From assembly GCA_013416795.1 (NCBI GenBank), contig RQSC01000010.1, positions 235,437 to 299,436 on the forward strand: a stretch of DNA of 64,000 nt, written 5' to 3'. Under the pieces are notes generated by a model, which worked only from the letters and a program-made list of their open reading frames with translations, had not been told where the DNA came from and did not search any database. How positions within the stretch are numbered: the stretch's first letter is position 1; the number at the start of each line of letters is the position of its first letter. A program made the position numbers and the translations under genes. Of this stretch, positions 2,952 through 64,000 are shown in pieces. This DNA comes from Prasinococcaceae sp. CCMP 1430 (taxonomy: Eukaryota > Plantae > Prasinodermophyta).

Positions 2952-3024
2952 GCCCCCATCGTCTAGAGGCCTAGGACACCTCCCTTTCACGGAGGCGACA
3001 CGAGTTCGAATCTCGTTGGGGGTA
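2952..3024 (+). tRNA. trnE: tRNA-Glu(UUC), copy 1
   Basis: Cloverleaf, anticodon loop CTTTCAC. Confidence 0.96.
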
Positions 3025-20724: not shown

Positions 20725-22093
20725 TGGAAGTCTTGTTATTGGTGGACGTGATCAAGAATCAACAGGATTTGCTTGGTGGTCTGGTAACGCACGTCTAATT
20801 AATCTTTCAGGAAAATTATTAGGTGCACACGTTGCACATGCTGGTCTTATCGTTTTTTGGGCTGGAGCTATGAACCTATTTGAGGTTGCTCACTTTGTAC
20901 CAGAAAAACCTATGTACGAGCAGGGTCTTATTTTATTACCACACCTAGCAGCTCTAGGTTGGGGTGTTGGACCTGGTGGTGAAGTTATTGATACATACCC
21001 ATACTTTGTATCAGGTGTACTTCACTTAATTTCTTCAGCAGTTTTAGGTTTCGGTGGTGTTTACCACTCACTTTTAGGTCCTGAAACACTAGAAGAATCT
21101 TTCCCATTCTTTGGATATGTTTGGAAAGATAAGAACAAGATGACAACAATTTTAGGTATTCACCTTGTTGTTCTTGGAATCGGAGCATTCCTTTTCGTTT
21201 GGAAAGCTATGTACTTCGGTGGAATCTATGATACATGGGCTCCAGGTGGTGGAGATGTTCGAATTGTAACAAACCCAACACTTAACCCAGGTATTATTTT
21301 TGGTTATCTTTTAAAGTCACCATTTGGTGGTGACGGTTGGATTTGTTCTGTAGATAACCTTGAAGACGTTGTTGGAGGTCATATTTGGATTGGTTCAATC
21401 GAAATTCTTGGTGGTTTCTGGCATATCTTTACAAAGCCATGGGCTTGGGCACGTCGTGCATTTGTATGGTCTGGTGAAGCTTACCTTTCATACAGTCTTG
21501 CAGCTGTTTCAACAATGGCATTTATTGCAGTACCAATGGTTTGGTACAACAATACTGTTTATCCTAGTGAATTCTTTGGTCCAACTGCGGCTGAAGCTTC
21601 ACAGTCTCAGACATTCACTTTCCTTGTACGTGACCAGCGTTTAGGTGCTAACGTTGCATCTGCACAAGGTCCAACAGGTCTTGGTAAGTACTTAATGCGT
21701 TCTCCTACTGGTGAAATTATTTTCGGTGGTGAAACAATGCGTTTCTGGGATTTCCGTGGTCCATGGGTAGAACCTTTACGTGGTCCTAACGGTTTAGATC
21801 TAAACAAAATTAAAAATGATATTCAGCCATGGCAAGAACGTCGTGCTGCTGAGTACATGACACATGCACCACTTGGTTCATTAAACTCAGTTGGTGGTGT
21901 AGCAACAGAAATTAACGCTGTAAACTATGTTAACCCACGTTCATGGTTAGCTACGTCTCATTTCTGTCTAGCATTCTTCTTCTTTGTAGCTCACTTATGG
22001 CATGCTGGTCGTGCTCGTGCTGCTGCAGCCGGGTTTGAGAAGGGTATTGATCGTGATACTGAACCAGTATTATCAATGCGTCCACTTGACTAA
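20708..22093 (+). CDS. psbC: Photosystem II CP43 (GTG start overlapping psbD by 17 nt)
   Basis: GGAGG SD then GTG GAA ACG CTC TTT AAT; [11 protein letters not shown]. Confidence 0.98.
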
Positions 22094-49281: not shown

Positions 49282-49353
49282 TATTTCTAACAAACAAGTT
49301 TCTAACATTCTTAAATTAGATGAGAATGTTTTTGTTAGTAAAATATTCTTACT

Positions 49354-50628
49354 GTGGTTGTTTTTATGATTTTTTCTTATAAAACTTTACAAATACTTTC
49401 CAAACTTTCTTCTTTAGATTTAACTTATGAAACATCTTTAACATATTTAAATCGACAAGATTATTTACAAGAACATGAATTTTCGACACGACATTTTAAA
49501 TATGTATTGAAACGCAAACTTTATTTAAAAAATTTAAATAAGGCTTTATATTCGATATGGTATGGTCTTCTACTCTTAAAAAGTTCTACCCTACCTCTAA
49601 AAAAACTAGATAAAAAAACACAATTAAATTCTAGCTATACTCACGATGAAGAATTAAAAAATTTATTAATTAATTTACATATTGAAGCCTGTTTAGTAGA
49701 AACTTTAAGAAATGGGGGAACAATAGAATTAATTTATGGAATTGAACGTGAATTAAGATTTTTAGGTATTGAATTTAATGAATTTTTTAATGCTATTCAG
49801 TTAAAAAAATGGGTTGTAAAACCAATCGTTAGTTCATTCTCTAATCCTATTGTTTCGTCATTATCGAATAATTCAAAAAGACAAACCTTAATTAAGAATT
49901 TTTTATCGACAGGTTATTTTATTAAACGGGACACATTACAAGTAATTCAAAAATTAGAAAGTGAATTAAGAGATGAACACCTAAATATCAGTGTAAATAT
50001 TCCTGAAAATTTAGCAACAAATTTAATTGTTTCATTCCCTTTTTACGCTAATATTAGTTATTTAAAAGAAAATCCTTTTTTTATAATAAAGGATAAACTT
50101 AATTTTGAAGAAATATTTTCAATTTTATTGTTAACTCAAGAAAATTTTTCTAAATCAGATGCCGACTATTGTCTTCAAGAATTAAAACAAAAAAATTGGG
50201 GAGATTTTTTGATTATCACTATTGACTATATTAAACTTCGTTATCCAGCTCTTTTAGTTGAATTTTTATACCGTCTAACACGTAAGCCAACAGTTTTTCC
50301 AATAATTCCCCAGACTAATAAAAAAGTAAATTGTCCACTTGGGGTATGGAGTTCCATTACTAGTTATCAAAAACTACGTAAAGATTATGTCAGTGCATAT
50401 CAATCATTAACAACTATTGAAGAAAAAATTGAACTTGAAAAAGCTTTTGAGACAATTGCAAATCATTTACAATATAATATTCGTCAAAGTATGTTGTCAT
50501 TTTTTGATCAAAAATATAATAGTTCACTAATGCAAAGGTCTGATAAATGTGTTATTGTGGATACTGAATTAGAAAGCTTCTTTTTACGAAAAACATTAAA
50601 AAATTATCTTTTAAATATGGTATACTAG
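49354..50628 (+). CDS. Unassigned 424-aa ORF (first ATG 49366); weak RNase E/G-like motifs
   Basis: Long uninterrupted frame in an AT-rich genome, co-oriented between rbcR and rps14; homology call is by eye only. Confidence 0.7.
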   Translation: MVVFMIFSYKTLQILSKLSSLDLTYETSLTYLNRQDYLQEHEFSTRHFKYVLKRKLYLKNLNKALYSIWYGLLLLKSSTLPLKKLDKKTQLNSSYTHDEELKNLLINLHIEACLVETLRNGGTIELIYGIERELRFLGIEFNEFFNAIQLKKWVVKPIVSSFSNPIVSSLSNNSKRQTLIKNFLSTGYFIKRDTLQVIQKLESELRDEHLNISVNIPENLATNLIVSFPFYANISYLKENPFFIIKDKLNFEEIFSILLLTQENFSKSDADYCLQELKQKNWGDFLIITIDYIKLRYPALLVEFLYRLTRKPTVFPIIPQTNKKVNCPLGVWSSITSYQKLRKDYVSAYQSLTTIEEKIELEKAFETIANHLQYNIRQSMLSFFDQKYNSSLMQRSDKCVIVDTELESFFLRKTLKNYLLNMVY

Positions 50629-50673
50629 TAAAAATTCTAAATTTAAAAACCTTTAAAGTAGGAGAAATATTTT

Positions 50674-50976
50674 ATGGCACGTAAAGGTACAGTTTATCGT
50701 GATAAGAAACGACGAGTATTAGTTCAAAAATATGCAACAAAACGAGCAAAACTTTTAAATGAATTTAAAAGTGCCTCTACAATTGGTGAAAAATTAAAAA
50801 TTCACGCAAAGATTCAAAAACTGCCGCGAAACTCAAGTCGCACACGTTTACATAATCGTTGTTTTATTACAGGACGACCAAAAGGATATTTCCGTTTCTT
50901 TGGTTTATCAAGACATCAAATTCGTGAATTGGGTTATGTAGGAGTATTACCGGGCGTAACTACTGCAAGTTGGTAA
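50674..50976 (+). CDS. rps14: Ribosomal protein S14
   Basis: [22 protein letters not shown]. Confidence 0.97.
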
Positions 50977-51006
50977 ATTATTATTTAATCAAGAATCTTT
51001 TTATTT

Positions 51007-51017
51007 TATGGTATACT
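51007..51017 (+). promoter_or_regulatory. Representative extended -10 promoter element TATGGTATACT (upstream of trnfM)
   Basis: TG-n-TATACT 11 nt before the tRNA; the same motif recurs upstream of many units (see findings). Confidence 0.7.
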
Positions 51018-51028
51018 TTATATATGGT

Positions 51029-51102
51029 CGCGGGGTAGAGCAGTCTGGTAGCTCATCGGGCTCATAACCCGAGGGTCAGTGGTTCAAATCCGCTCCCCGC
51101 TA
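51029..51102 (+). tRNA. trnfM: Initiator tRNA-fMet(CAU)
   Basis: C1 mismatch, three G-C pairs in the anticodon stem, loop CTCATAA. Confidence 0.93.
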
Positions 51103-51132
51103 TCTATATATAAATAACTTTTAATTAAAAAT

Positions 51133-51366
51133 ATGGTTAAAATTAGACTTAAAAAATTAGGACGTAAAAAAGCACCATTTTACAGAATTATTGTAATTGA
51201 CAGTCGTAAACGACGTAGTGGTCATGGTTTAGTTGAACTTGGATGGTATGATCCAATTAAAAAACAATCACAAATTGATCGTCAAAAGACTTTATTTTAC
51301 ATTAAAAATGGGGCTCAACCGACAGCCACTGTTTCTGCTTTATTACAAAAAGCAGCATTATTGTAG
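51133..51366 (+). CDS. rps16: Ribosomal protein S16, intronless
   Basis: MVKIRLKKLGRKKAPFYRIIVIDSR, GAQPTATV. Confidence 0.96.
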   Translation: MVKIRLKKLGRKKAPFYRIIVIDSRKRRSGHGLVELGWYDPIKKQSQIDRQKTLFYIKNGAQPTATVSALLQKAALL

Positions 51367-51415
51367 ATTTAAAAATATTAATATTTAAAAAGAGCATAAT
51401 AGTTCTTTTTAAATC

Positions 51416-51487
51416 GGGTTGGTAGCTCAGGGGTAGAGCACTCGGCTTTTAACCGACTGGTCGTGGGTTCAAATCCCACCCAACCCA
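51416..51487 (+). tRNA. trnK: tRNA-Lys(UUU), intronless
   Basis: Anticodon loop CTTTTAA. Confidence 0.93.
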
Positions 51488-51512
51488 AAATTTAAATGCT
51501 TTTTCGTACTTT

Positions 51513-51597
51513 GCATGCATGGCCGAGTGGTCGAAGGCAGGGGCCTCATAAGCCTCCTCCCGAAAGGGCACCGCGGGTTCAAATCCTGCTGTATGCA
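51513..51597 (+). tRNA. trnI: tRNA-Ile(CAU), lysidine type, long variable arm
   Basis: GCATGCA acceptor, CAU anticodon, CCCGAAAGGG variable arm; fMet and elongator Met tRNAs are present separately. Confidence 0.8.
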
Positions 51598-51664
51598 AAC
51601 CTTTCAAGACTCTAAATTAATAATATTGCATTTATAACTATTATTAGGTTATAATATAATTAAA

Positions 51665-51736
51665 TGGGGTATCGCCAAGTGGTAAGGCAACTGGTTTTGG
51701 TCCTGTCATTCGGAGGTTCGAATCCTTCTACCCCAG
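51665..51736 (+). tRNA. trnQ: tRNA-Gln(UUG)
   Basis: TGGGGTA acceptor, loop TTTTGGT. Confidence 0.93.
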
Positions 51737-51822
51737 TTATTAAATAAAATTATTTTTATAAAAATCGCTTTTATTTTTAATTGTTTAATAATTTATTAAA
51801 CAATTAAAAATAAAAATACTTC

Positions 51823-52305
51823 TTAGAATAAACCAAGTGTAATAGCTTTATCAATTGGCATTGCTGCTCCTACACCCATCCATAATGCAAAGATTGTTCC
51901 AAATAGGAAAACAACCATAGCAATCGGACGACGGAATGGGTTTTGGAATTTGTTTACGTTCTCAATAAACGGAACAGTAATTAATCCAGCTGGAACTGCA
52001 GCCATAGAAAGTACTCCAAGTAATTTATTAGGAATAGTTCGAAGTAAGTTAAATGTTGGGAAGAAATACCATTCTGGTAAAATCTCTAGTGGTGTTGCAA
52101 ATGGATTTGCAGGCTCACCTACTACAACTGGATCTAAAGTTGCTAGTCCAATAAGACAAGCAAATGTTCCAAAAATAACTACTGGGAAAATATATAATAA
52201 ATCATTTGGCCATGCAGGCTCACCATAATAGTTATGCCCCATACCTTTAGCTAATTTAGCTCGTAAAATTGGATCTGTTAAGTCTGGTTTTTTTGTTACG
52301 CTCAT
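51823..52305 (-). CDS. petD: Cytochrome b6f subunit IV
   Basis: [18 protein letters not shown]. Confidence 0.99.
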
Positions 52306-52364
52306 AGTAAATTTATAATATTAAAAAATATTTATATTTGTATATCTGACAATTAAATTAAAAA

Positions 52365-53012
52365 TTATAGTGGACCAGAAATACCTTGCTTACGAATCAT
52401 TAAGAAGTGTGCTAGCATGAATACCGCTGTTAGCAGTGGTAAAACAAACGTGTGTGCACTATAGAAACGCGTTAATGTTGCTTGACCAACACCAACACCT
52501 CCACGAAGTACTTCAACTAGTAACGGACCTACAACAGGAATAGCTTCAGGTACACCTGTTACAATCTTACAAGCCCAGTAGCCAACCTGATCCCATGGTA
52601 ATGAGTATCCAGTTACACCAAATGATACTGTACAAACAGCCATAATAACACCAGTTACCCAAGTTAACTCACGTGGCTTCTTAAATCCACCTGTAAGGTA
52701 AACACGTGTCACATGTAGAATCATTGATAAAACCATCATACTTGCAGACCAACGGTGGATTGAACGAATTAACCAACCAAAGTTTACATCACTCATTAGG
52801 TAACTTACAGAATCAAATGCTTCTGTTACTGTTGGACGGTAATAAAATGTCATTGCAAATCCTGTTGCAACTTGTACTAGGAAACATGTAAATGTAATAC
52901 CACCTAAGCAGTAAAAAATATTTACATGTGGAGGAACATATTTACTTGAAACGTCATCAGCAATTGCTTGGATTTCTAGACGTTCTTCAAACCAATCATA
53001 AACTTTACTCAT
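52365..53012 (-). CDS. petB: Cytochrome b6
   Basis: [26 protein letters not shown]. Confidence 0.99.
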
Positions 53013-53114
53013 AAAATACTAAAAGTTTTTACAGTTTATCGCCAGTTAACATAATATAAAAATTTATATTGTAAGCTCAATAATATTTTATTGAGGGAAG
53101 TTAAAAAATTTCTA

Positions 53115-53176
53115 TTTTAATTTTGGTATGTTTTTAATGAAAAAGATTTTTCATTAAAAACATACCAAAATTAAAA
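53115..53176. terminator. 30-bp inverted repeat between psbH and petB
   Basis: ttttaattttggtatgtttttaatgaaaaa-ga-tttttcattaaaaacataccaaaattaaaa. Confidence 0.8.
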
Positions 53177-53179
53177 TTC

Positions 53180-53383
53180 TTATTGCCAGTTTACGGCTAA
53201 TCCATCAAGTAACACTGATGAATTAAAGATTTCTAATAAAATTACATTAAAAACTAAAAAAAGACCACCAGCTACAGCCATTGGAATAGTTGTTCCCCAT
53301 CCAGGGGCAACTTTACCATACTCTGAGTTTAGTGGCTTTAAAAGGTTTCCTAAAACTGTTTGCTTTCCTTTTGTTGCTGCCAT
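53180..53383 (-). CDS. psbH: Photosystem II PsbH
   Basis: [19 protein letters not shown]. Confidence 0.97.
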
Positions 53384-53520
53384 AGGTATGTATATATGTA
53401 TTTATTCGTATGATTTAATGCTAAAAAAATATGTGCTATAATTCTCTTTAAATAGATATGTTCTTTACATAAATAGAACAATAACTTTTCAAGTAAATCC
53501 CAATAAATTAGGAGTGAATT

Positions 53521-53652
53521 ATGGAAACAGCTATGCTATTTGGTATTTTTTTCGGTACATTACTTGTTGGCATGACAGGGTATTCATTATACACTGCTTT
53601 TGGCCAACCATCAAAAACACTTCGTGATCCATTTGAAGACCATGAAGATTAA
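53521..53652 (+). CDS. psbN: PsbN (Pbf1)
   Basis: METAML...[24 protein letters not shown]; antisense within the psbB cluster. Confidence 0.97.
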
Positions 53653-53692
53653 AAAGTATAACAGCAGACTTAATATCTGCTGTTATAAAAAA

Positions 53693-53788
53693 CTATTTTA
53701 CAATACGTGGAGGCTCACGGAAAAAGATTGCAAAGAAAATAATTCCTAAAGTTCCAACTAATAAAAAAGTATAAACAAGTGCTTCCAT
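53693..53788 (-). CDS. psbT: Photosystem II PsbT
   Basis: [31 protein letters not shown]. Confidence 0.97.
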
Positions 53789-53894
53789 TTATATATCCTC
53801 GTAAATTAATAATGTTTACAAAATCTTTTTATTTAATATTTTACAAAATGCAAAATTCTTTAATAAAATTCTTTAGTAAATAAACATAATGTTT

Positions 53895-55421
53895 TTAAAC
53901 AGTCTGCTTCTTAGTTGATACATCACCAAGTTTTTGGAATGCACCAAATTCAACTTGAGCATCAAGATCTGGGTCAATACCAGCAAATACGTCACGGAAA
54001 ATTGTACGTGCACCATGCCAAATATGACCAAAGAAGAATAATAATGCAAAGTTTAAATGACCAAATGCAAACCATCCACGCGGACTACTACGGAATACAC
54101 CATCTGATTGTAATGTTACACGATCAAATTCGAAAATTTCACCTAACTGTGCACGACGTGCATATTTTTTAACAGTTGCTGGATCAGTAAATGATACACC
54201 ATCTAATTCACCACCATAGAATGTTACTGTTACACCTACCTGTTCGATTGCATACTTTGATTCTGCACGACGGAATGGAATATCTGCACGTACAATACCA
54301 TCTTTATCTGTTAATAAAACAGGGAAAGTTTCAAAGAATGTTGGCATACGACGAACAAATAGTTCATTTCCATTTTTGTCTGTGAAGACTGCATGACCAA
54401 GCCATCCAGCTGCAATACCATCACCGTTTACCATTGGTCCTGCACGGAATAAACCACCCTTAGCTGGGTTGTTTCCAATGTAGTCATAAAAAGCTAACTT
54501 TTCTGGAATTTTTGCCCAAGCTTCTGATAAAGATAATCCATTTGCGATATCTGACTGAACACGCTTTTGAATTTCTTGCTCAAAGAAACCTTGATCCCAC
54601 TGGTAACGAGTTGGACCATATAATTCAATTGGAGTTGCAGCACATCCGTACCACATTGTTCCAGCTACTACGAAGGCTGCCCAGAATACAGCAGCAATAC
54701 TACTTGATAGTACAGTTTCTACGTTACCCATACGTAATACTTTGTATAAACGTTGTGGTGGACGAACTGTTAGGTGGAATAAACCAGCAATAATACCAAC
54801 GATACCTGCAGCGATATGGTGTGCAGGAATACCACGTGGGTTAAATGGATCAAAACCTTCAGCACCCCATGTAGGTGCTACTGGCTGAACACTACCTGTA
54901 ATTCCATATGGATCAGAAACCCAAATTCCAGGTCCATAAAGTCCTGTTACGTGAAAAGCTCCAAATCCGAAACAAAGTAAACCTGATAAGAATAAGTGGA
55001 TACCAAAAATCTTTGGTAAGTCCAGAGCTGGATCACCTGTTCGTGGATCACGGAAAAGTTCTAGATCCCAGTAAACCCAATGCCATAACGCAGCTAGGAA
55101 TAAAAGACCTGATAAAACGATGTGAGCTGCTGCTACACCTTCATAACTCCAAAATCCTGGATTAGTAATACTTTCACCACTAATTGACCATCCACCCCAT
55201 GAATTTTCAATTCCTAAACGTGTCATGAATGGTAAAACAAACATTCCTTGACGCCACATTGGGTTTAGTACTGGATCTGACGGATCAAAAACAGATAATT
55301 CATAAAGAGCCATTGACCCTGCCCAACCAGCAACTAATGCAGTATGCATTAAGTGAACAGCAATTAAGCGGCCCGGGTCATTTAAAACAACAGTGTGTAC
55401 TCGAAACCATGGAAGTCCCAT
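53895..55421 (-). CDS. psbB: Photosystem II CP47
   Basis: [19 protein letters not shown]. Confidence 0.99.
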
Positions 55422-55598
55422 AATTAATTTTTATTTTTAAATATCGATTTTTGCTTTCTTCCTTATTAATAAACTAAAATTCTTATTTATTAAATTTAAC
55501 TTTAAGAATTATATATCTAAACATATTATACCTTATAATTTTTTTCTTATTAAATAGAATTAACAAGGTGCGATATGGTATACTAGAGAATAATAATA

Positions 55599-55670
55599 GG
55601 CTCAATAGCTCAGTGGTAGAGCAGGAGACTCATAAGCTCTTGGTCGCAGGTTCAAATCCCGCTTGAGCCA
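55599..55670 (+). tRNA. trnM: Elongator tRNA-Met(CAU)
   Basis: GGCTCAA/TTGAGCC acceptor, loop CTCATAA. Confidence 0.88.
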
Positions 55671-55733
55671 AATTAACATATTTGGTAATGAAAATATATA
55701 GGTTTATAAAATAATTTAATTAGTATTACTTTT

Positions 55734-55806
55734 TACCCCCAACGAGATTCGAACTCGTGTCGCCTCCGTGAAAGGGAGGTGTCCTAGGCCTCTAGACGAT
55801 GGGGGC
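55734..55806 (-). tRNA. trnE: tRNA-Glu(UUC), copy 2
   Basis: Exact reverse complement of 2952-3024. Confidence 0.96.
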
Positions 55807-55998
55807 TTATTGGTAGTTCTATTCAAATTATACCATAGGTTTTAATTTTGTCAAGTATCTCATAGCGTGCAAATTATAAATTTTAGCCAAGAATCATAGA
55901 AAAAAAGAATTTATATGGTATACTATTTTTTAATATTTGATCCGAATTATTAATATATCACTTATTTATAAATCTTTTTGATTTAGAGGAGAATTGTT

Positions 55999-56133
55999 AT
56001 GCTAGCTTTAACTCTTGCAAAATTACCTGAAGCGTACGCGATTTTTGATCCATTAGTAGACGTACTGCCAGTTATTCCAGTTTTATTTTTAGCTTTAGCT
56101 TTTGTTTGGCAAGCTGCGGTAAGTTTCCGTTAA
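55999..56133 (+). CDS. psbK: Photosystem II PsbK
   Basis: [22 protein letters not shown]...WQAAVSFR. Confidence 0.97.
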
Positions 56134-56253
56134 TTTTTAAACTAGTGCTAAATATTTTTAGCACTAGTTCATAGACAGATTGAATCATACATTTGCAATA
56201 AAATATTTTTTTTTGATATAATAACAGTACTTAAGTAATTTTATTATCTTAAA

Positions 56254-56335
56254 GCGGACGTGGCGGAATTGGTAGACGCGCCAGATTTAGGTTCTGGTAG
56301 GATTTCCTGTGAGAGTTCGAGTCTCTCCGTCCGCA
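56254..56335 (+). tRNA. trnL: tRNA-Leu(UAG)
   Basis: Anticodon loop TTTAGGT, long variable arm. Confidence 0.94.
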
Positions 56336-56440
56336 AATAATTATTTTCAATTGACTAGAAACCCAACTTTAAAAAAAATGCGGTATACTAATAATTAGAG
56401 ATTTTTTCTAAATTATCCTTTTATTTATATCTATATATTT

Positions 56441-56956
56441 ATGCCACGTTCACAACGAAACGACAATTTTATTGATAAGACCTTTACGATTATTGCAGAT
56501 TTATTATTAACAATTTCTCCAATTGCTACTCGTTCAAAAAAAGCTTTTAGTTATTATCGTAATGGAATGTCTGCCCAAGCTGAAGGGGAATATGCTGAAG
56601 CTTTACAAAATTATTATGAAGCAATGCGTTTAGAATTAGACCCATATGACCGTAGTTATATTTTATATAATATTGGTTTAATTCATGCGGCTAATGGAAA
56701 ACATGCCCGTGCGTTAGAATATTATTATCAAGCCTTAGAACGAAACCCACTAATGCCACAAGCATTGAATAATATTGCGGTTATTTATCATTATCAAGGG
56801 GAACAAGCTTTAGAACAAGGAGATACGCAATTATCAAAAAATTTTTTCTCAAAAGCACGAGAATATTGGAAACAAGCAATTCGTTTATCCCCATTAAGTT
56901 ATAATGAAGCTTATAATTGGGTATCATTAACTGAAAATGAAAATATGCTTGATTAA
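56441..56956 (+). CDS. ycf3: PSI assembly TPR protein Ycf3, resident intronless copy
   Basis: [31 protein letters not shown]. Confidence 0.98.
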
Positions 56957-57003
56957 TTACTTTAGTATATTTAAGTAAAATTTTACCTAATTACTCTAAA
57001 TCT

Positions 57004-57417
57004 ATGATTAATGTTATCTTATATCCAACAATTTTTATTGGGATTTTTTTGATTGGTTGGGCTATTACTTTATATACTTTACAGTTTGTCCAACCAACTT
57101 TGGCTAAAGAATCTGATATTATTTTATCAACCATTACAAGTCTTTGTGGAGGTATTTTATTTTTTCAAGGATGGCGTTTAGACCCATTATTGTTTACTTG
57201 TTATATTTTATTAGTAGTGACGATTGTCTTACTTTCATTAGAATTATTACAACTTCGAAATACTCAAACATCTTCTCCTCCAAGCTTTTCTGAAGAAGAA
57301 AATAGTTTTCCTAATAGCGATAACACTACACCATCTTCATTAAAAGAAAAAACAAAAAAGTATAGTTCATTTTTAAACCAGAAACTATTAAAACCACGTA
57401 TTAGTGAAACCAATTAA
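57004..57417 (+). CDS. ycf66: Ycf66
   Basis: MINV..., CGGILFFQGWRLDPLL. Confidence 0.88.
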   Translation: MINVILYPTIFIGIFLIGWAITLYTLQFVQPTLAKESDIILSTITSLCGGILFFQGWRLDPLLFTCYILLVVTIVLLSLELLQLRNTQTSSPPSFSEEENSFPNSDNTTPSSLKEKTKKYSSFLNQKLLKPRISETN

Positions 57418-57445
57418 TACGTGGAATTTTCAATTAGAAAACGTT

Positions 57446-57519
57446 TCGGGATACAAGGATTCGAACCTTGGACCTTCGCAACCCAAATGCGACGCGCTAC
57501 CAAACTGCGCTACATCCCG
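57446..57519 (-). tRNA. trnP: tRNA-Pro(UGG)
   Basis: CGGGATG acceptor, loop TTTGGGT. Confidence 0.94.
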
Positions 57520-57643
57520 ACATATTTAAAATAAAGTATACCATACAAAATAATATTTCTTATTAAATGAAAGAGTATTTAACATAATATTCTTATTTAT
57601 TTTATAAAAGTTAAAAATTTTATCAAAACTTCAAACATTAAAC

Positions 57644-57654
57644 TATGGTATAAT
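57644..57654 (+). promoter_or_regulatory. Extended -10 element TATGGTATAAT upstream of atpB
   Basis: TG-n-TATAAT, co-oriented with atpB. Confidence 0.7.
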
Positions 57655-57763
57655 AATTCATATAAAGGTGTATTAAATTTTAATAAATTTTTAATTATTT
57701 AAAAAATTAATCAAAATCACATATTTCGCCTTAGTACCATAATTTATTCCTTATTCATACTAA

Positions 57764-59236
<1,473 letters not shown>

Positions 59237-59292
59237 TTATTCTTCAAGCAAGTAATAAAAATATTACTAGTTTCTTACATCTTTAAATTATT

Positions 59293-59691
59293 ATGACACT
59301 ACAAGTAAAAGTTATTGCTCCCGATAGAGTTGTTTGGGAAACAACAGCAGATGAAATTATTCTGCCAACAAACACAGGACAAATGGGTGTATTAACAGAT
59401 CATACATCATTACTAACAGCCTTAGAAATTGGGGTAATGCAAGTTCGAGTAAATTCACAATGGGTTCCTCTTGTTGTAATGGCTGGATTTGCACTTATCC
59501 AAAATAATATTTTAACCGTTATTATTAACGAAGCCGAAAAAGCTGAAACTATTAACTTAAGCGAAGCGGAAACACAATTAGCGGAAGCAGAAGCAGCTTT
59601 AGCAAAAAGTGAGTCACGCAAAGACCAAGTTGAGAAAACATTTTTAGTTAAACGTGCACGCGCACGTCTAACAGCAGCCCAAAAAGCATAA
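59293..59691 (+). CDS. atpE: ATP synthase CF1 epsilon
   Basis: LPTNTGQMGVLTDH; follows atpB. Confidence 0.96.
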   Translation: MTLQVKVIAPDRVVWETTADEIILPTNTGQMGVLTDHTSLLTALEIGVMQVRVNSQWVPLVVMAGFALIQNNILTVIINEAEKAETINLSEAETQLAEAEAALAKSESRKDQVEKTFLVKRARARLTAAQKA

Positions 59692-59698
59692 AATGTTT

Positions 59699-59746
59699 TT
59701 TTCTTTTAAATAATTTGAGAAATTTCTCAAATTATTTAAAAGAAAA
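59699..59746. terminator. Perfect 48-bp palindrome after atpE
   Basis: ttttcttttaaataatttgagaaa/tttctcaaattatttaaaagaaaa. Confidence 0.8.
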
Positions 59747-59873
59747 GTTTTTAATTATATATGCTAGTCAGATACAAATATATTAGGTATAATATATTTT
59801 TAGTATTTGAAGATATATAAAATATATTCTAGATAGTAACTAAGTATTGTTACTAAATTATGGGGTAAAATCA

Positions 59874-59990
59874 ATGCTTGCATTAAAAATTACAGTATAT
59901 ACTGTTGTTATTTCATTTATTTCACTCTTTATTTTTGGGTTCTTATCTGGTGATCCAGCTCGAAACCCAAACCGAAACGATGTTGGTTAA
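59874..59990 (+). CDS. psbI: Photosystem II PsbI
   Basis: [12 protein letters not shown]...[12 protein letters not shown]. Confidence 0.96.
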
Positions 59991-60116
59991 TTAACTTTTC
60001 GTGGGTGTAATATACGTTAAATTTTAGATAACTCAACCATTATTTTTCATTCTTACCTTGTAGCTATATAAAACTTAAAATTTTTAAGGTTTTATGGTAT
60101 ACTACGAAGTGAAAAT

Positions 60117-60203
60117 GGAAAGATGGCTGAGTGGTCGAAAGCGGCGGATTGCTAATCCGTTGTATGTTTTTGCATACCGGGGGTTCGAATCCCCCTCTTT
60201 CCG
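60117..60203 (+). tRNA. trnS: tRNA-Ser(GCU)
   Basis: Anticodon loop TTGCTAA, long variable arm. Confidence 0.94.
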
Positions 60204-60269
60204 TTGTCATTAGCTAATTTTTTTCTTATATTTTTAGAGTTTAATATATTTTTTCGAACAATAAAACTT

Positions 60270-60359
60270 ATGGATTTAATTGGTATTTCATGGGCCTTTC
60301 TTATGGTTATGTTTACATTTTCGCTATCATTAGTAGTATGGGGACGTAGCAGTGCTTGA
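60270..60359 (+). CDS. petN: Cytochrome b6f subunit PetN, last two residues aberrant
   Basis: [29 protein letters not shown]; the usual ending is WGRSGL*. Confidence 0.9.
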
Positions 60360-60421
60360 CTGCCAGTTTAGAAGTACATAAATGGAAACAAAGATAAGGA
60401 TGGATGTACTAAACACTAATT

Positions 60422-60545
60422 ATGCCTAGATCGCAAAGAAACGACAATTTTATTGATAAAACATTCACTATTGTGGCAGACCTTTTGCTACAAGTGATTC
60501 CCACCACCCAGCGAGAAAAAGAAGCCTTTACCTATTACAGAGATG
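60422..60545 (+). CDS. ycf3: Second ycf3 (streptophyte-type), exon 1
   Basis: 124 nt: [41 protein letters not shown]+G. Confidence 0.95.
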
Positions 60546-61217
60546 GTGTGGCTTGTTTTTCCAATTAGCCTTTGGGCTAAGCTTAAATCAAGCTAAAGCA
60601 GTAGATATATAGCCAACTCACGCTGAGTAAAGGTAAGCCCTTTTTGATGGTGATTCCTTTTGCCGTGCTCTTTCGGTTAAAACAGTGGTCCAGGTGGTTC
60701 TCGTTTGCATGACTGCCTGACGCGATCATAAAAGCTTAGTATATTCAAGGTTACTTGTTAACCCTTAGCCCTTTAAATAAACTAAAAACCAATAGCAGGA
60801 AAAGTTACAAGAAAACAAAATTCAACAGGCCTTAAGCCCTTAGTTAATCCAAAAACCTAGGATAGCCTAAGCGCTCTAGGTACAGAGTTTTATGGCTAGG
60901 ATGGTGGGCTTCCATCTCGCCCACCTTACATGAGCCCAGAGAGCCATTCGGGGAAATGCTTGTGTCTTATTCCTGATAAACACATAGTGTGAGAACAAGT
61001 ATAGGGCAAGTTGAATTCTTTTCAGAATTTCGCTTACTCCTCAGGATCGCTAAGTATGTACACCTCAAACCTTAGCTCCCTGCTGCTTAGGATAATTTGA
61101 TTTGCACTAAGCAAACCATAGATTTCATTAGGCTGGCTGGGAGGAGCCTTATGAGGCGAAAACCGCACGTATGGTTTTGTAACGGCGCCTACATTTTCAT
61201 GATCCGGCGACCGCAAC
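60546..61217 (+). other. Group II intron (ycf3 position 124), 672 nt, no ORF
   Basis: 5' GTGTG; domain V GAGCCTTATGAGGCGAAAACCGCACGTATGGTTT near 61144; A at -8; 3' AAC. Confidence 0.9.
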
Positions 61218-61447
61218 GAATGTCAGCTCAATCAGAAGGAGAATATGCCGAAGCTTTACAAAACTATTATGAAGCCATGCGCTTAGAGATAGATCCCTAT
61301 GATCGGAGCTATATTTTGTATAATATAGCGCTAATTCATACCAGCAATGGAGAACATGCTAAAGCCTTAGAATATTATTTCCAAGCTTTAGAGCGAAATC
61401 CATCTTTACCTCAAGCCTTCAACAATATGGCCGTGATCTGTCATTAT
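61218..61447 (+). CDS. ycf3: Second ycf3, exon 2
   Basis: 230 nt: (G)[31 protein letters not shown]...NNMAVICHY. Confidence 0.96.
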
Positions 61448-62191
61448 GTACGCCCCCCCACTTTTTGCAGGTTTGACCTTATGGTTTTCCGTCTGCTAAC
61501 GGAGAAAGATCCCCTCCTCAAGGGTCCAGCGATTTTTTTTAGCTGGAGGTGAAATGTTTTTTACCGCTACACAACACAATATTTTTGTGTAGGGCTGATC
61601 TATATCTCCATGGACAAGCAAAGTAAAGCAAAGCAAGGTGAAAGAATGACATTAGCGTCGTTAAGATTGCGAACTGGCTTTTGTTGCCTTCGACTTTGGC
61701 CCTAGCTAGATCTGCAATGCTCAACCTTAGTGTAATAGTTAGGTTGGCAACCTTATCAGCAGCGATGTAGAATTCCGTCCTCCAGAGATGGCTTTGATAG
61801 AAAAAAGAGGTGAAAAGCCAGGACGATAAATAAATACGTCATTTACTCAAGCCCAAACTGCATACAGAAAGGGGGGTTTTTTTTTCTAAGCCTGAAGATA
61901 AAAAAAGGACGCTCAAAACAGCTGTATACTTACTAATCTTAGCTGGTTATAGCCAAGCATGAGCGGTCGGCTTTTATAACAAGTATGTATGTGGTATATT
62001 TGAAAAATCCAGAAAAATCTCATGACCTCGTCCTAGAAAATTCAATGTGAGAAAACGTCCTATTTTTTACTATAATTCACAGATACATGCTTTCCATTTT
62101 CTATTCTAGCGAAGTGCCGACTGAGCCGTATGATGTGGAAACTGTCAAGTACGGTTCTTAGGGGAGGAGGCAAGAGTCTACCTATCCCATC
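61448..62191 (+). other. Group II intron (ycf3 position 354), 744 nt, no ORF
   Basis: 5' GTACG; domain V GAGCCGTATGATGTGGAAACTGTCAAGTACGGTTC at 62123-62157; domain VI ...CCTATCCCATC with A at -8. Confidence 0.88.
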
Positions 62192-62347
62192 CGAGGAGAG
62201 CAAGCTATTGAGCAAGGAGATTCTGAAAGTTCTGAAGCCTGGTTTGATCAAGCTGCCACCTATTGGAAACAAGCCATTGCATTGGCCCCTAATAACTATA
62301 TAGAAGCCCAGAATTGGCTCAAAGTCACAGGGCGAATTTCAGAGTAA
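62192..62347 (+). CDS. ycf3: Second ycf3, exon 3
   Basis: [51 protein letters not shown]; spliced frame is 169 aa and intact. Confidence 0.95.
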
Positions 62348-62487
62348 ATGGCTTTTAAGCTCAATGCATTATCCGAAAAAAAGGAAAGACTAAAGTAAAA
62401 AGTTACGCTTTAATGATTACATAGCGTTTTGGTATGTATTGAGATACTAAATCGCGAACTCTACTTATAAATTACTTTTTTGTACCT

Positions 62488-62510
62488 TGGCCCTCTGAGT
62501 CAGAGGGCCA
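62488..62510. terminator. GC-rich hairpin downstream of the second ycf3
   Basis: tggccctctg-agt-cagagggcca followed by TTTTT. Confidence 0.6.
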
Positions 62511-63945
62511 TTTTTGTTTTTGTAAAGTCCATTTTTCCAAATTACAGCGAAACAAAGTACCTCAGTAATGGTCATGTGAAAAACATCCGGTCCCTTTTTC
62601 CATCTAATATCTGTTAAAAAACACAGAATTTTTGTCAACACAGGCAAGTTTATATGTGTATGTGTATTAGAAAAGGCCAAAACTGATATCTACAGTGTCA
62701 ATTTTGTGTGAAAAGCTAATCTTATGAAGCCATCAAGATTTGAAAATGGGAATTGAAGATTCCTCTGGCCGACTAGATTGCCGAAGAAAGTGTTCCAAGA
62801 AGTCTGAGAACAAAGCAAGACTATTAGTACACTTAGTACTCAGAATATTTGAGGAACTTGTCAAGCCAAAACCGAGTCTGACCTGGAGATAAAAAAATGG
62901 TGATGTTAGTATTCAGAAACAGATCAAATGAAGTATCTTGGCTGGAATTTTTTTTCAAGTAGCGCAAGCTTTGGTCATAAAGTTTTTTAGATGCAGGTTG
63001 GCTCTCTACTTGACTAGTCAACAAGAAGGCCTCATAAATAGTACAAGGCATCGGAATGCTCTCGCCAAACGTTCGGCATCAAAAACTTTTACTAATACTG
63101 AGTTTGCGCCATCTTATCTGAATAGTCTCTTTTGGAATCATGTTTTGGTACGTCAGAGTTTAGAGTAGGTGCTTTCCAATGTGTATTAATCAGTCGAAAA
63201 GTGCTTCATTTCGGTCCTCTTTTTGCAGTCAGTTCCAAACCAGTGGGCACAGCTTGGTATATTTACCTTTTACAGGCCAAACTGTTTAAAGCCAAAGCCA
63301 TGGCTCCGTCTAATATTTGAAACAATATAGATGAACATATTCAAAAATAAGGAAATCCATGAAGTGTTGGTCTTTGATCTGAGTCTAGACGCCAAAAATT
63401 AGCATCAAGTATTACTACTTCCAAACCATTACTAATCCCGCCAGCATCTTTGATGCTATATAAAGAAGTGGGACCAACAGGAATTTCAGTGGCAAAAACA
63501 TTGTGCGAAACATTCTTTCCAATTATTGACTTTAAGAAAAAGACTGATCTGGTTTTAATATATTGGCAAACTGCTTAGGCTTTTCAAACTCCAGTATTAG
63601 ATGGTCGAAGGTTTTTCTAAACAAATTTATTTATTTCTTGTTCGTCTAACCTATTGATGGTTCCTTTTCTTTGATGCTACGCTACAATTGGCATTGGAAG
63701 CGAGTATTTTGGCCAAAGCGAAACATTATGCCAAAAGGGCCAGGAATTAGATTTGATTTTTTTCCATATCGATGATATTATACTCAGGAATACAGTGGTG
63801 CAATCACACTTACGGACAACTTAGTAAACCAAGAAGTTGCCTATTTCTTTTAAAAAAATAGCCCAGATAGCCAAACAGATAGACAGACAGACAAATAGAG
63901 AAAAAACCAAGCGAACACTATGTGTTTTTGACCTAAGATTTGAAG

Positions 63946-64000
63946 ATATAGCTAGACCTTAGAATCTCTTTTACTTGTCACTTCTAAGGTCTAGCTATAT
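63946..64000. repeat. 19-bp inverted repeat reaching the window end
   Basis: atatagctagaccttagaa-17 nt-ttctaaggtctagctatat. Confidence 0.8.

Follow-up and report, generated by a model that had tools for sequence, protein, structure and literature searches.

The window, by which we mean the whole stretch of 64,000 nucleotides analysed here, consists of a long head (positions 1-60,349) and a short tail that meet inside the petN gene (Table 1). The head is a plastome of the Prasinoderma coloniale type. The cpDNA published for P. coloniale has a length of 77,750 bp, lacks introns and carries a duplicated trnE(uuc) (Lemieux, Otis and Turmel 2014, PMC4194372). The head has in common with it a GC content of 34%, the lack of introns and of an IR, a single rrn operon, the duplicated trnE(uuc) and the genes ftsI, ftsW, minD, ycf66 and rps16. 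In its two trnE(uuc) copies, ycf66, rps16, ftsI, ftsW and zero introns, and in an apparent size of approximately 77.7 kb, the head agrees with Prasinococcales and P. coloniale plastomes. In metagenome contigs the native gene order 3' of petN is ycf12-psaM-clpP-ycf4-accD-rpoB-rpoC1-rpoC2-chlL-chlN-petG-petA, followed by window position 1. The contigs and the window together give a native circle of 77,410 bp (60,349 + 17,061). Wild plastomes match the head at 99.5-100% identity, and the head has not decayed. Its ycf3 has a GC content of 32% (16% at third codon positions, GC3), and the product shares 98-99% identity with Ycf3 proteins from the marine environment.

Table 1. Features at the junction and in the tail, in window coordinates
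Feature	Position	Strand	Remarks
Native ycf3, intronless, 171 aa	56441..56956	+	ORF; used as comparator
petN	60270..60359	+	Native to 60,349; last two codons and stop supplied by tail
Breakpoint, Prasinoderma-type plastome versus unrelated plastid DNA	60349..60350		Match to all six metagenome contigs ends at 60,349
5' flank of ycf3-2, 72 nt	60350..60421	+	No rps4 or trnS upstream
ycf3-2 exon 1, 124 nt	60422..60545	+	Gene model, intron-site comparison
ycf3-2 intron 1, group II, 672 nt, 5' end GTGTG	60546..61217	+	Domains V/VI at 61,141-61,217
ycf3-2 exon 2, 230 nt	61218..61447	+	Bryophyte Ycf3, 99% identical (aa); Physcomitrella, 86.6% (nt)
ycf3-2 intron 2, group II, 744 nt, 5' end GTACG	61448..62191	+	Domains V/VI at 62,121-62,190
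ycf3-2 exon 3, 156 nt including TAA stop	62192..62347	+	Gene model, intron-site comparison
Stretch without recognisable gene, 1.65 kb, GC 36%	62348..64000		tRNA, Pfam and tblastn searches
10-bp GC-rich palindrome followed by T-run, 140 nt past the ycf3-2 stop	62489..62509	+	Read from the sequence

An abrupt switch near 60,350 had been proposed in the initial annotation, and comparison with six marine metagenome contigs from Tara/ENA (L001-L004, L009 and L010) places it to the base. These contigs match window positions 49,293-60,349 at 99.5-100% identity and all six diverge exactly after 60,349, a point within the two final codons of petN. In the alignment the native sequence reads ...GGACGTAG|TGGCCTGTAA, which gives a PetN C-terminus of GRSGL*. 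The window reads ...GGACGTAG|CAGTGCTTGA, and the join, through which the conserved C-terminus is lost, gives its PetN the ending GRSSA*. The native PetN of L001 is identical to that of P. coloniale (YP_009057520.1), whereas the window PetN differs from it. The chimeric PetN has no exact match in a public assembly index or in a collection of 15 billion proteins. The join itself is contiguous and contains no Ns.

Past the 72-nt flank the tail carries a second ycf3 gene (ycf3-2), which consists of three exons totalling 510 nt and encodes an intact Ycf3 of 169 amino acids. The two group II introns that had been described past this point are borne out by their domains V and VI, both of which are recognised by Rfam; no other group II domain V/VI was found by Rfam in the 64-kb window. 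Intron 1 scores 44.7 bits with RF04357 and 37.6 bits with RF00029, and its end motifs are common to other copies of ycf3 intron 1. Intron 2 scores 50.9 bits with RF00029, exceeding the gathering score, although its 5' end deviates from the GUGYG consensus at position 3. Domains V and VI of intron 2 are 63-67% identical to those of other ycf3 intron 2 copies as opposed to 49-56% to those of intron 1 copies. The introns are inserted after CDS positions 124 and 354, the sites used in Physcomitrella (L019) and in environmental streptophyte loci (L006, L016). In streptophyte-type comparison loci rps4 lies upstream of ycf3. BLAST matches between these loci and the tail begin only 2-5 nt 5' of the ycf3-2 ATG (tail positions 68-73).

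The remainder of the tail was thought to be without a recognisable gene for about 1.6 kb, and three kinds of search of 62,348-64,000 agree. Zero tRNAs were found, the ORFs in this stretch have no significant Pfam match (best E 0.13), and tblastn with 2,702 plastid ORFs yielded no gene remnants, the best match being only E 7e-4 over 27 residues. The palindrome and T-run downstream of ycf3-2 look, from the sequence, like a 3' stem-loop. A perfect 19-bp hairpin is present at the very end of the tail (63,946-64,000).

The composition of the tail also sets it apart. The overall GC content is 39%. GC3 is 34% in ycf3-2 versus 16% in the native ycf3, in keeping with the reported shift towards C/G-ending codons, and non-coding GC is 35-43% in the tail versus 16-25% in the native spacers. 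The tetranucleotide distance from tail to head is larger than that of any of 98 equally long segments of the head (z=3.3). The motif TATGGTATAMT, allowing at most one mismatch, has 23 matches versus 4.8 expected. Its last copy lies at 60,093 and there are zero copies in the tail, as the initial annotation had indicated.

The tail Ycf3 is 72.6% identical to the native copy. In a tree whose taxon set left out glaucophyte, red-algal and cyanobacterial outgroups, it falls into a 98/95-supported clade with Nitella and Chaetosphaeridium (Charophyceae and Coleochaetophyceae), embryophytes and five environmental Ycf3 proteins. A sister relationship to the native copy is rejected by the AU test (p=4.4e-10). 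In its two group II introns, cis-spliced and located at 124 and 354 (exons of 124, 230 and 156 nt), and in its protein affinity the gene agrees with a streptophyte-type ycf3, its product grouping with streptophytes rather than with the resident copy. The rps4-(trnS)-ycf3 neighbourhood is not seen; the join leaves just 72 nt 5' of the gene, and the 1.65 kb 3' of it is gene-free. Judged from Ycf3 phylogeny, intron sites and composition, the tail is genuine plastid DNA of a different, streptophyte-type green lineage. The same three lines of evidence support the earlier proposal that two plastomes are joined here. Glaucophyte plastid DNA is an unlikely source. Glaucophytes are set apart by description, the glaucophyte plastome paper mentioning no group II introns and only approximately 15% non-coding DNA.

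No close relative of the tail was retrieved. The best match of its Ycf3 is a moss protein (92% amino acid identity) and its exons are at most 87% identical at the nucleotide level. At these values no known organism is identical to the tail, which therefore cannot simply be put down to contamination from a known species. Neither the environmental streptophyte-type contigs (L005-L008, L012-L018) nor Physcomitrella (L019) is its source, since only the exons align, at 75-87%. Ten ORFs of the tail were looked up as exact proteins in the same assembly index and protein collection as the chimeric PetN, with no match. Two degenerate protein-level DNA patterns had 0 matches among JGI metagenome contigs, a weak negative because the scan missed L006 and L007, two loci derived from JGI that the second pattern fits in a local comparison. 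One such pattern had 0 matches among GTDB genomes. Among 5.8 billion clustered proteins no Ycf3 exceeds 92% identity to that of the tail. A tail from a green lineage whose plastome is absent from the databases searched would be a lesser novelty than a physically real join, but a likelier one.

We infer, rather than observe in reads, that the junction is very probably an artefactual join at which the end of a plastome abuts unrelated plastid DNA. A circular P. coloniale-type plastome would have been linearised at one point, giving a copy, apparently of unit length, that ends at 60,349. This copy would then have been placed against an unrelated sequence, either by an assembly or scaffolding misjoin or because contigs or records were concatenated without a gap. 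The tail would be a co-sequenced contaminant or a separate contig from outside the Prasinoderma plastome. Since the plastid block is apparently one unit-length circle, 60,349/60,350 resembles a contig or record boundary and not an insertion. None of the six environmental contigs has the junction, nor does the published P. coloniale plastome, and this upholds the earlier preference for a chimeric assembly or a concatenated record. The absence of Ns at the join is an observation that counts against an artefact.

That the join is physically real, with streptophyte-type plastid DNA, including an intact ycf3, covalently linked to the plastome of the strain in the organism or one of its compartments, is very improbable; it would amount to plastid DNA passing from one lineage to another. 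A different reading is nuclear integration, in which a whole plastome was inserted into a chromosome as a NUPT and the tail is flanking nuclear DNA. We consider this very unlikely. The P. coloniale nuclear genome has a GC content of 69.6% versus 39% in the tail, and on these grounds the tail was rejected as nuclear DNA. Moreover, the group II introns of the tail are of the plastid type, its intact gene is a plastid gene from a different lineage, an insert of exactly unit length would be a coincidence, and the head is as undecayed as its 99.5-100% identity to wild plastomes indicates.

Also very unlikely is plastid-to-plastid horizontal transfer, in which the strain's plastome would have received a genuine insert of foreign, streptophyte-type plastid DNA. 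The contiguity of the sequence across the join, the intact second ycf3 with recognisable catalytic intron domains, and the lack of a match between the tail and any sequenced organism are what such a transfer would have in its favour. Yet the resident plastome stops at 60,349 and is not resumed by 64,000, so that the foreign DNA is not flanked by it on both sides. The genes natively 3' of petN sit instead before window position 1, the plastid block appears to equal one unit circle, and the junction occurs in no independent sample among the six Tara/ENA contigs and the published plastome. The join also truncates petN, and a second ycf3 would be redundant. The initial annotation had regarded genuine transfer as highly unusual, and the native petN-ycf12 continuation in the metagenome contigs points the same way. 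Finally, both organelle genomes, plastid and mitochondrial, are included in the published P. coloniale assembly, and the tail might be the start of the mitochondrial genome of the same alga, next in record order. This is effectively refuted by GC content, introns and gene content. The P. coloniale mtDNA has 54.2% GC and no group II introns, and its paper makes no mention of ycf3, whereas the tail, at 39% GC, has a ycf3 interrupted by two group II introns.

A genuine junction would amount to a rare case of plastid-to-plastid transfer between green lineages that are only distantly related. The practical value of the artefactual reading is in quality control, as the scaffold would mix a complete Prasinoderma-type plastome with plastid DNA of another alga. 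Findings that span the join, such as 'two ycf3 genes in one plastome', should be treated as artefacts until reads show otherwise. The tail provides a small sample of a streptophyte-type plastome.

Several known systems bear comparison with the locus. The published P. coloniale plastome has neither a second ycf3 nor introns, and its PetN ends GRSGL where that of the window ends GRSSA*. In the ycf3 of charophytes and land plants two cis-spliced group II introns occupy sites 124 and 354, as in the tail, and the domains V/VI of the tail introns are nearer to those of the orthologous intron than to those of the other intron. The tail introns can be aligned with streptophyte-type introns solely at their ends, and their GC content is 41-43% as compared with 21-39%, the introns of L005 (45%) excepted. 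Other differences from the charophyte and land-plant genes are the lack of rps4/trnS upstream, the lack of psaA or any other gene within 1.65 kb downstream, and the GTACG start of intron 2. The two intron positions had been described as typical of streptophytes and not of prasinophytes. The sites do match those of Physcomitrella, but site 124 is not exclusive to streptophytes, as the ycf3 of Picocystis salinarum has a trans-spliced intron there (PMC4194372). The likeness is that a green alga outside the streptophytes has a group II intron at this site of ycf3. In contrast, both tail introns are cis-spliced, the whole tail gene and not an intron alone is streptophyte-like, and residence of the tail ycf3 in a prasinophyte plastome is doubtful. 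The locus also resembles assembly misjoins and gapless concatenations of organelle contigs, in which a unit-length circular genome is cut at an arbitrary intragenic point and abuts unrelated sequence; here, too, the probable cut lies within a gene and the junction is missing from independent data.

The DNA past position 60,349 does not continue the genome that precedes it. Six independent Tara/ENA marine metagenome contigs (L001-L004, L009 and L010) match the window with 99.5-100% identity, and each alignment stops at 60,349. The abrupt switch near 60,350 that had been read from the sequence is thus borne out, as the six contigs diverge exactly after this base. A three-way alignment places the break within petN. 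The native gene reads ...GGACGTAG|TGGCCTGTAA (PetN ...WGRSGL*) and the window reads ...GGACGTAG|CAGTGCTTGA (PetN ...WGRSSA*), with no similarity left between the two past the break in this alignment. In the wild contigs petN is followed by ycf12, psaM, clpP, ycf4, accD, rpoB, rpoC1, rpoC2, chlL, chlN, petG and petA. Because this arc meets window position 1 after 17,061 nt (L009 20,461 = window 1), the native circle of the Tara population comes to 77,410 bp, compared with 77,750 bp for the published culture genome of P. coloniale (A+T 65.9%).

Features of the window on both sides of the junction
Feature	Position	Length	Details
trnE(uuc), first copy	2952-3024 (+)		100% identity over 75 nt to second copy
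rrn operon	14.7-19.5 kb		single
trnE(uuc), second copy	55734-55806 (-)		100% identity over 75 nt to first copy
native ycf3	56,441-56,956		intronless ORF
ycf3-2 exon 1	60,422-60,545	124 nt	
ycf3-2 intron 1		672 nt	5' GTGTG, 3' ...CGCAAC
ycf3-2 exon 2	61,218-61,447	230 nt	
ycf3-2 intron 2		744 nt	5' GTACG (61448-61452), 3' ...CCCATC
ycf3-2 exon 3	62,192-62,347	156 nt	
GC-rich palindrome and T-run	62,489-62,509		after the ycf3-2 stop codon
hairpin	end of window	19 bp	perfect

The tail (60,350-64,000) carries a second, intron-bearing ycf3 (ycf3-2) whose spliced exons form an uninterrupted open frame of 169 codons. The two group II introns noticed earlier are confirmed: both have clear domain V/VI structures at the 3' end, and Rfam group II intron domains are confined to the tail of the window (intron 1, RF04357 at 44.7 bits and RF00029 at 37.6 bits; intron 2, RF00029 at 50.9 bits). 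The last 90 nt of intron 2 share 63-67% identity with ycf3 intron 2 copies versus 49-56% with intron 1 copies. The orthologue signal at the end of intron 1 is weaker (64% at most), and outside their ends neither intron can be aligned to other ycf3 introns. The GTACG start of intron 2 departs from the group II consensus GTGYG, which is present in all other ycf3 introns compared, and could alter splicing if the gene is expressed. The 1.65 kb after ycf3-2 was described as lacking a recognisable gene, and searches there returned no tRNA and no significant Pfam match, and comparison with 2,702 plastid ORFs revealed no meaningful similarity.

Exon 2 of ycf3-2 encodes a protein 99% identical to liverwort and moss Ycf3. 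Over the full spliced protein, identity is 92% to Physcomitrella, 91% to an environmental lineage (P0011) and 88% to Chaetosphaeridium, whereas the native copy, which lies 3.5 kb upstream, reaches just 72.6%. A maximum-likelihood tree built from 50 Ycf3 sequences places ycf3-2 in a clade (98/95 support) that also includes Nitella, Chaetosphaeridium, embryophytes and some of the environmental sequences, and to which a klebsormidiophyte is sister. The native Ycf3 lies in a separate clade of marine environmental sequences (100/99), and an AU test rejects the grouping of the two window copies (p=4.4e-10). The introns of ycf3-2 sit at sites 124 and 354, and tblastn with the spliced protein shows identical insertion sites in Physcomitrella cpDNA (L019) and in the environmental contigs L006, L016 and L005. 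Their earlier use as a streptophyte marker holds only in part, as Picocystis has a trans-spliced ycf3 intron at site 124 and intron position alone is therefore not exclusive to streptophytes. Since glaucophytes, red algae and cyanobacteria are not represented in the tree, we call the tail ycf3 streptophyte-type on the strength of the clade together with the intron sites.

Other sources for the tail fit poorly. Mitochondrial DNA of P. coloniale is ruled out by its GC content (54.2%), its lack of group II introns and a genome paper that does not mention ycf3, and nuclear DNA by a GC content of 69.6%. Glaucophyte plastomes seem unlike the tail, being described without group II introns and with ~15% non-coding DNA. 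Exact look-ups of the tail ORFs in public data gave no match. Degenerate DNA patterns gave none in GTDB genomes and none in JGI metagenomes; the metagenome negative is weak, as the scan also overlooked JGI contigs on which a local comparison does find the pattern. The source is therefore taken to be a green alga of streptophyte type. Its nearest available relative may be L005 (ENA ERZ25039523 contig_70997, 74 kb), although the tree does not settle this; L005 is an environmental plastome whose ycf3 has intron 1 only. L005 and the tail have in common unusual Ycf3 residues and a high-GC intron 1 (45% in L005), within which 52 nt match at 83%. Two other environmental streptophyte-type plastome contigs carry fragmented phage-integrase-like ORFs near psbI/psbK (L014 1-1066 and L015 1-735), which may be foreign insertions.

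Composition also shifts sharply at the junction. Native spacers nearby have 16-25% GC; the tail has 35% in its 5' flank, 43% and 41% in the introns and 36% downstream. The tetranucleotide profile, proposed in the initial annotation as a check, sets the tail farther from the head than all 98 equal-size head windows (z=3.3). The TATGGTATAMT motif reported from the head is a true element, strongly over-represented (23 matches versus 4.8 expected) between 8405 and 60103, with the final copy at 60,093. It usually lies just 5' of tRNA or protein genes and resembles an extended -10 element, as in promoters for the plastid-encoded polymerase.

The initial annotation was accurate in what it observed, and the reading it preferred, an artefact that joins two plastomes, is supported. 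We consider it very probable that the junction is not real biology but marks either a misjoin or the boundary of a contig or record, where a complete Prasinoderma-type plastome meets plastid DNA of another alga. A circular plastome contig would have been opened at some arbitrary base before other sequences were attached to it. A true transfer of foreign plastid DNA into the plastome is a slim prospect. Near-100% identity of the tail to another plastome, named earlier as grounds against transfer, was not seen; its exons have 75-87% nucleotide identity to Physcomitrella and environmental streptophyte-type plastomes, and no close DNA match was retrieved. However, a foreign insertion should have plastome on both flanks, the junction is missing from the six wild contigs and the published P. 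coloniale genome, the cut strips petN of its conserved C-terminus, and the chimeric PetN has no match in a collection of 15 billion proteins. A whole-plastome NUPT as the origin of the plastid block would need an insert of exactly one unit length, a coincidence.

The head (1-60,349) is a compact AT-rich green-algal plastome with 34.3% GC (33.2% without the rrn operon) and 26 tRNA genes, two of them trnE(uuc). An IsrR (antisense to isiA) Rfam match of 186 bits at 21122-21308 (-) lies within an ORF of 483 aa, probably psbC, and most likely reflects isiA/psbC homology and no true antisense RNA gene. Between ycf3 and ycf66, L002 (7557-7658) shows an indel or duplication of ~100-155 nt relative to window 56950-57004 and the other contigs, which is length variation at the population level. 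In marine metagenome contigs with an identical AtpE, this gene is surrounded by ycf66, rps16, clpP, accD, rpoB/C1/C2 and chlL/N. L001 encodes a native PetN that matches P. coloniale YP_009057520.1 at every residue, and the genome type agrees with published descriptions; the head is therefore a P. coloniale-type plastome. Prasinococcales plastomes are small, IR-less and intronless and carry ycf66, rps16, ftsI and ftsW (Lemieux et al. 2014, PMC4194372), and the head is the same kind of genome, down to the duplicated trnE(uuc) already known from Prasinoderma (PMC4194372).
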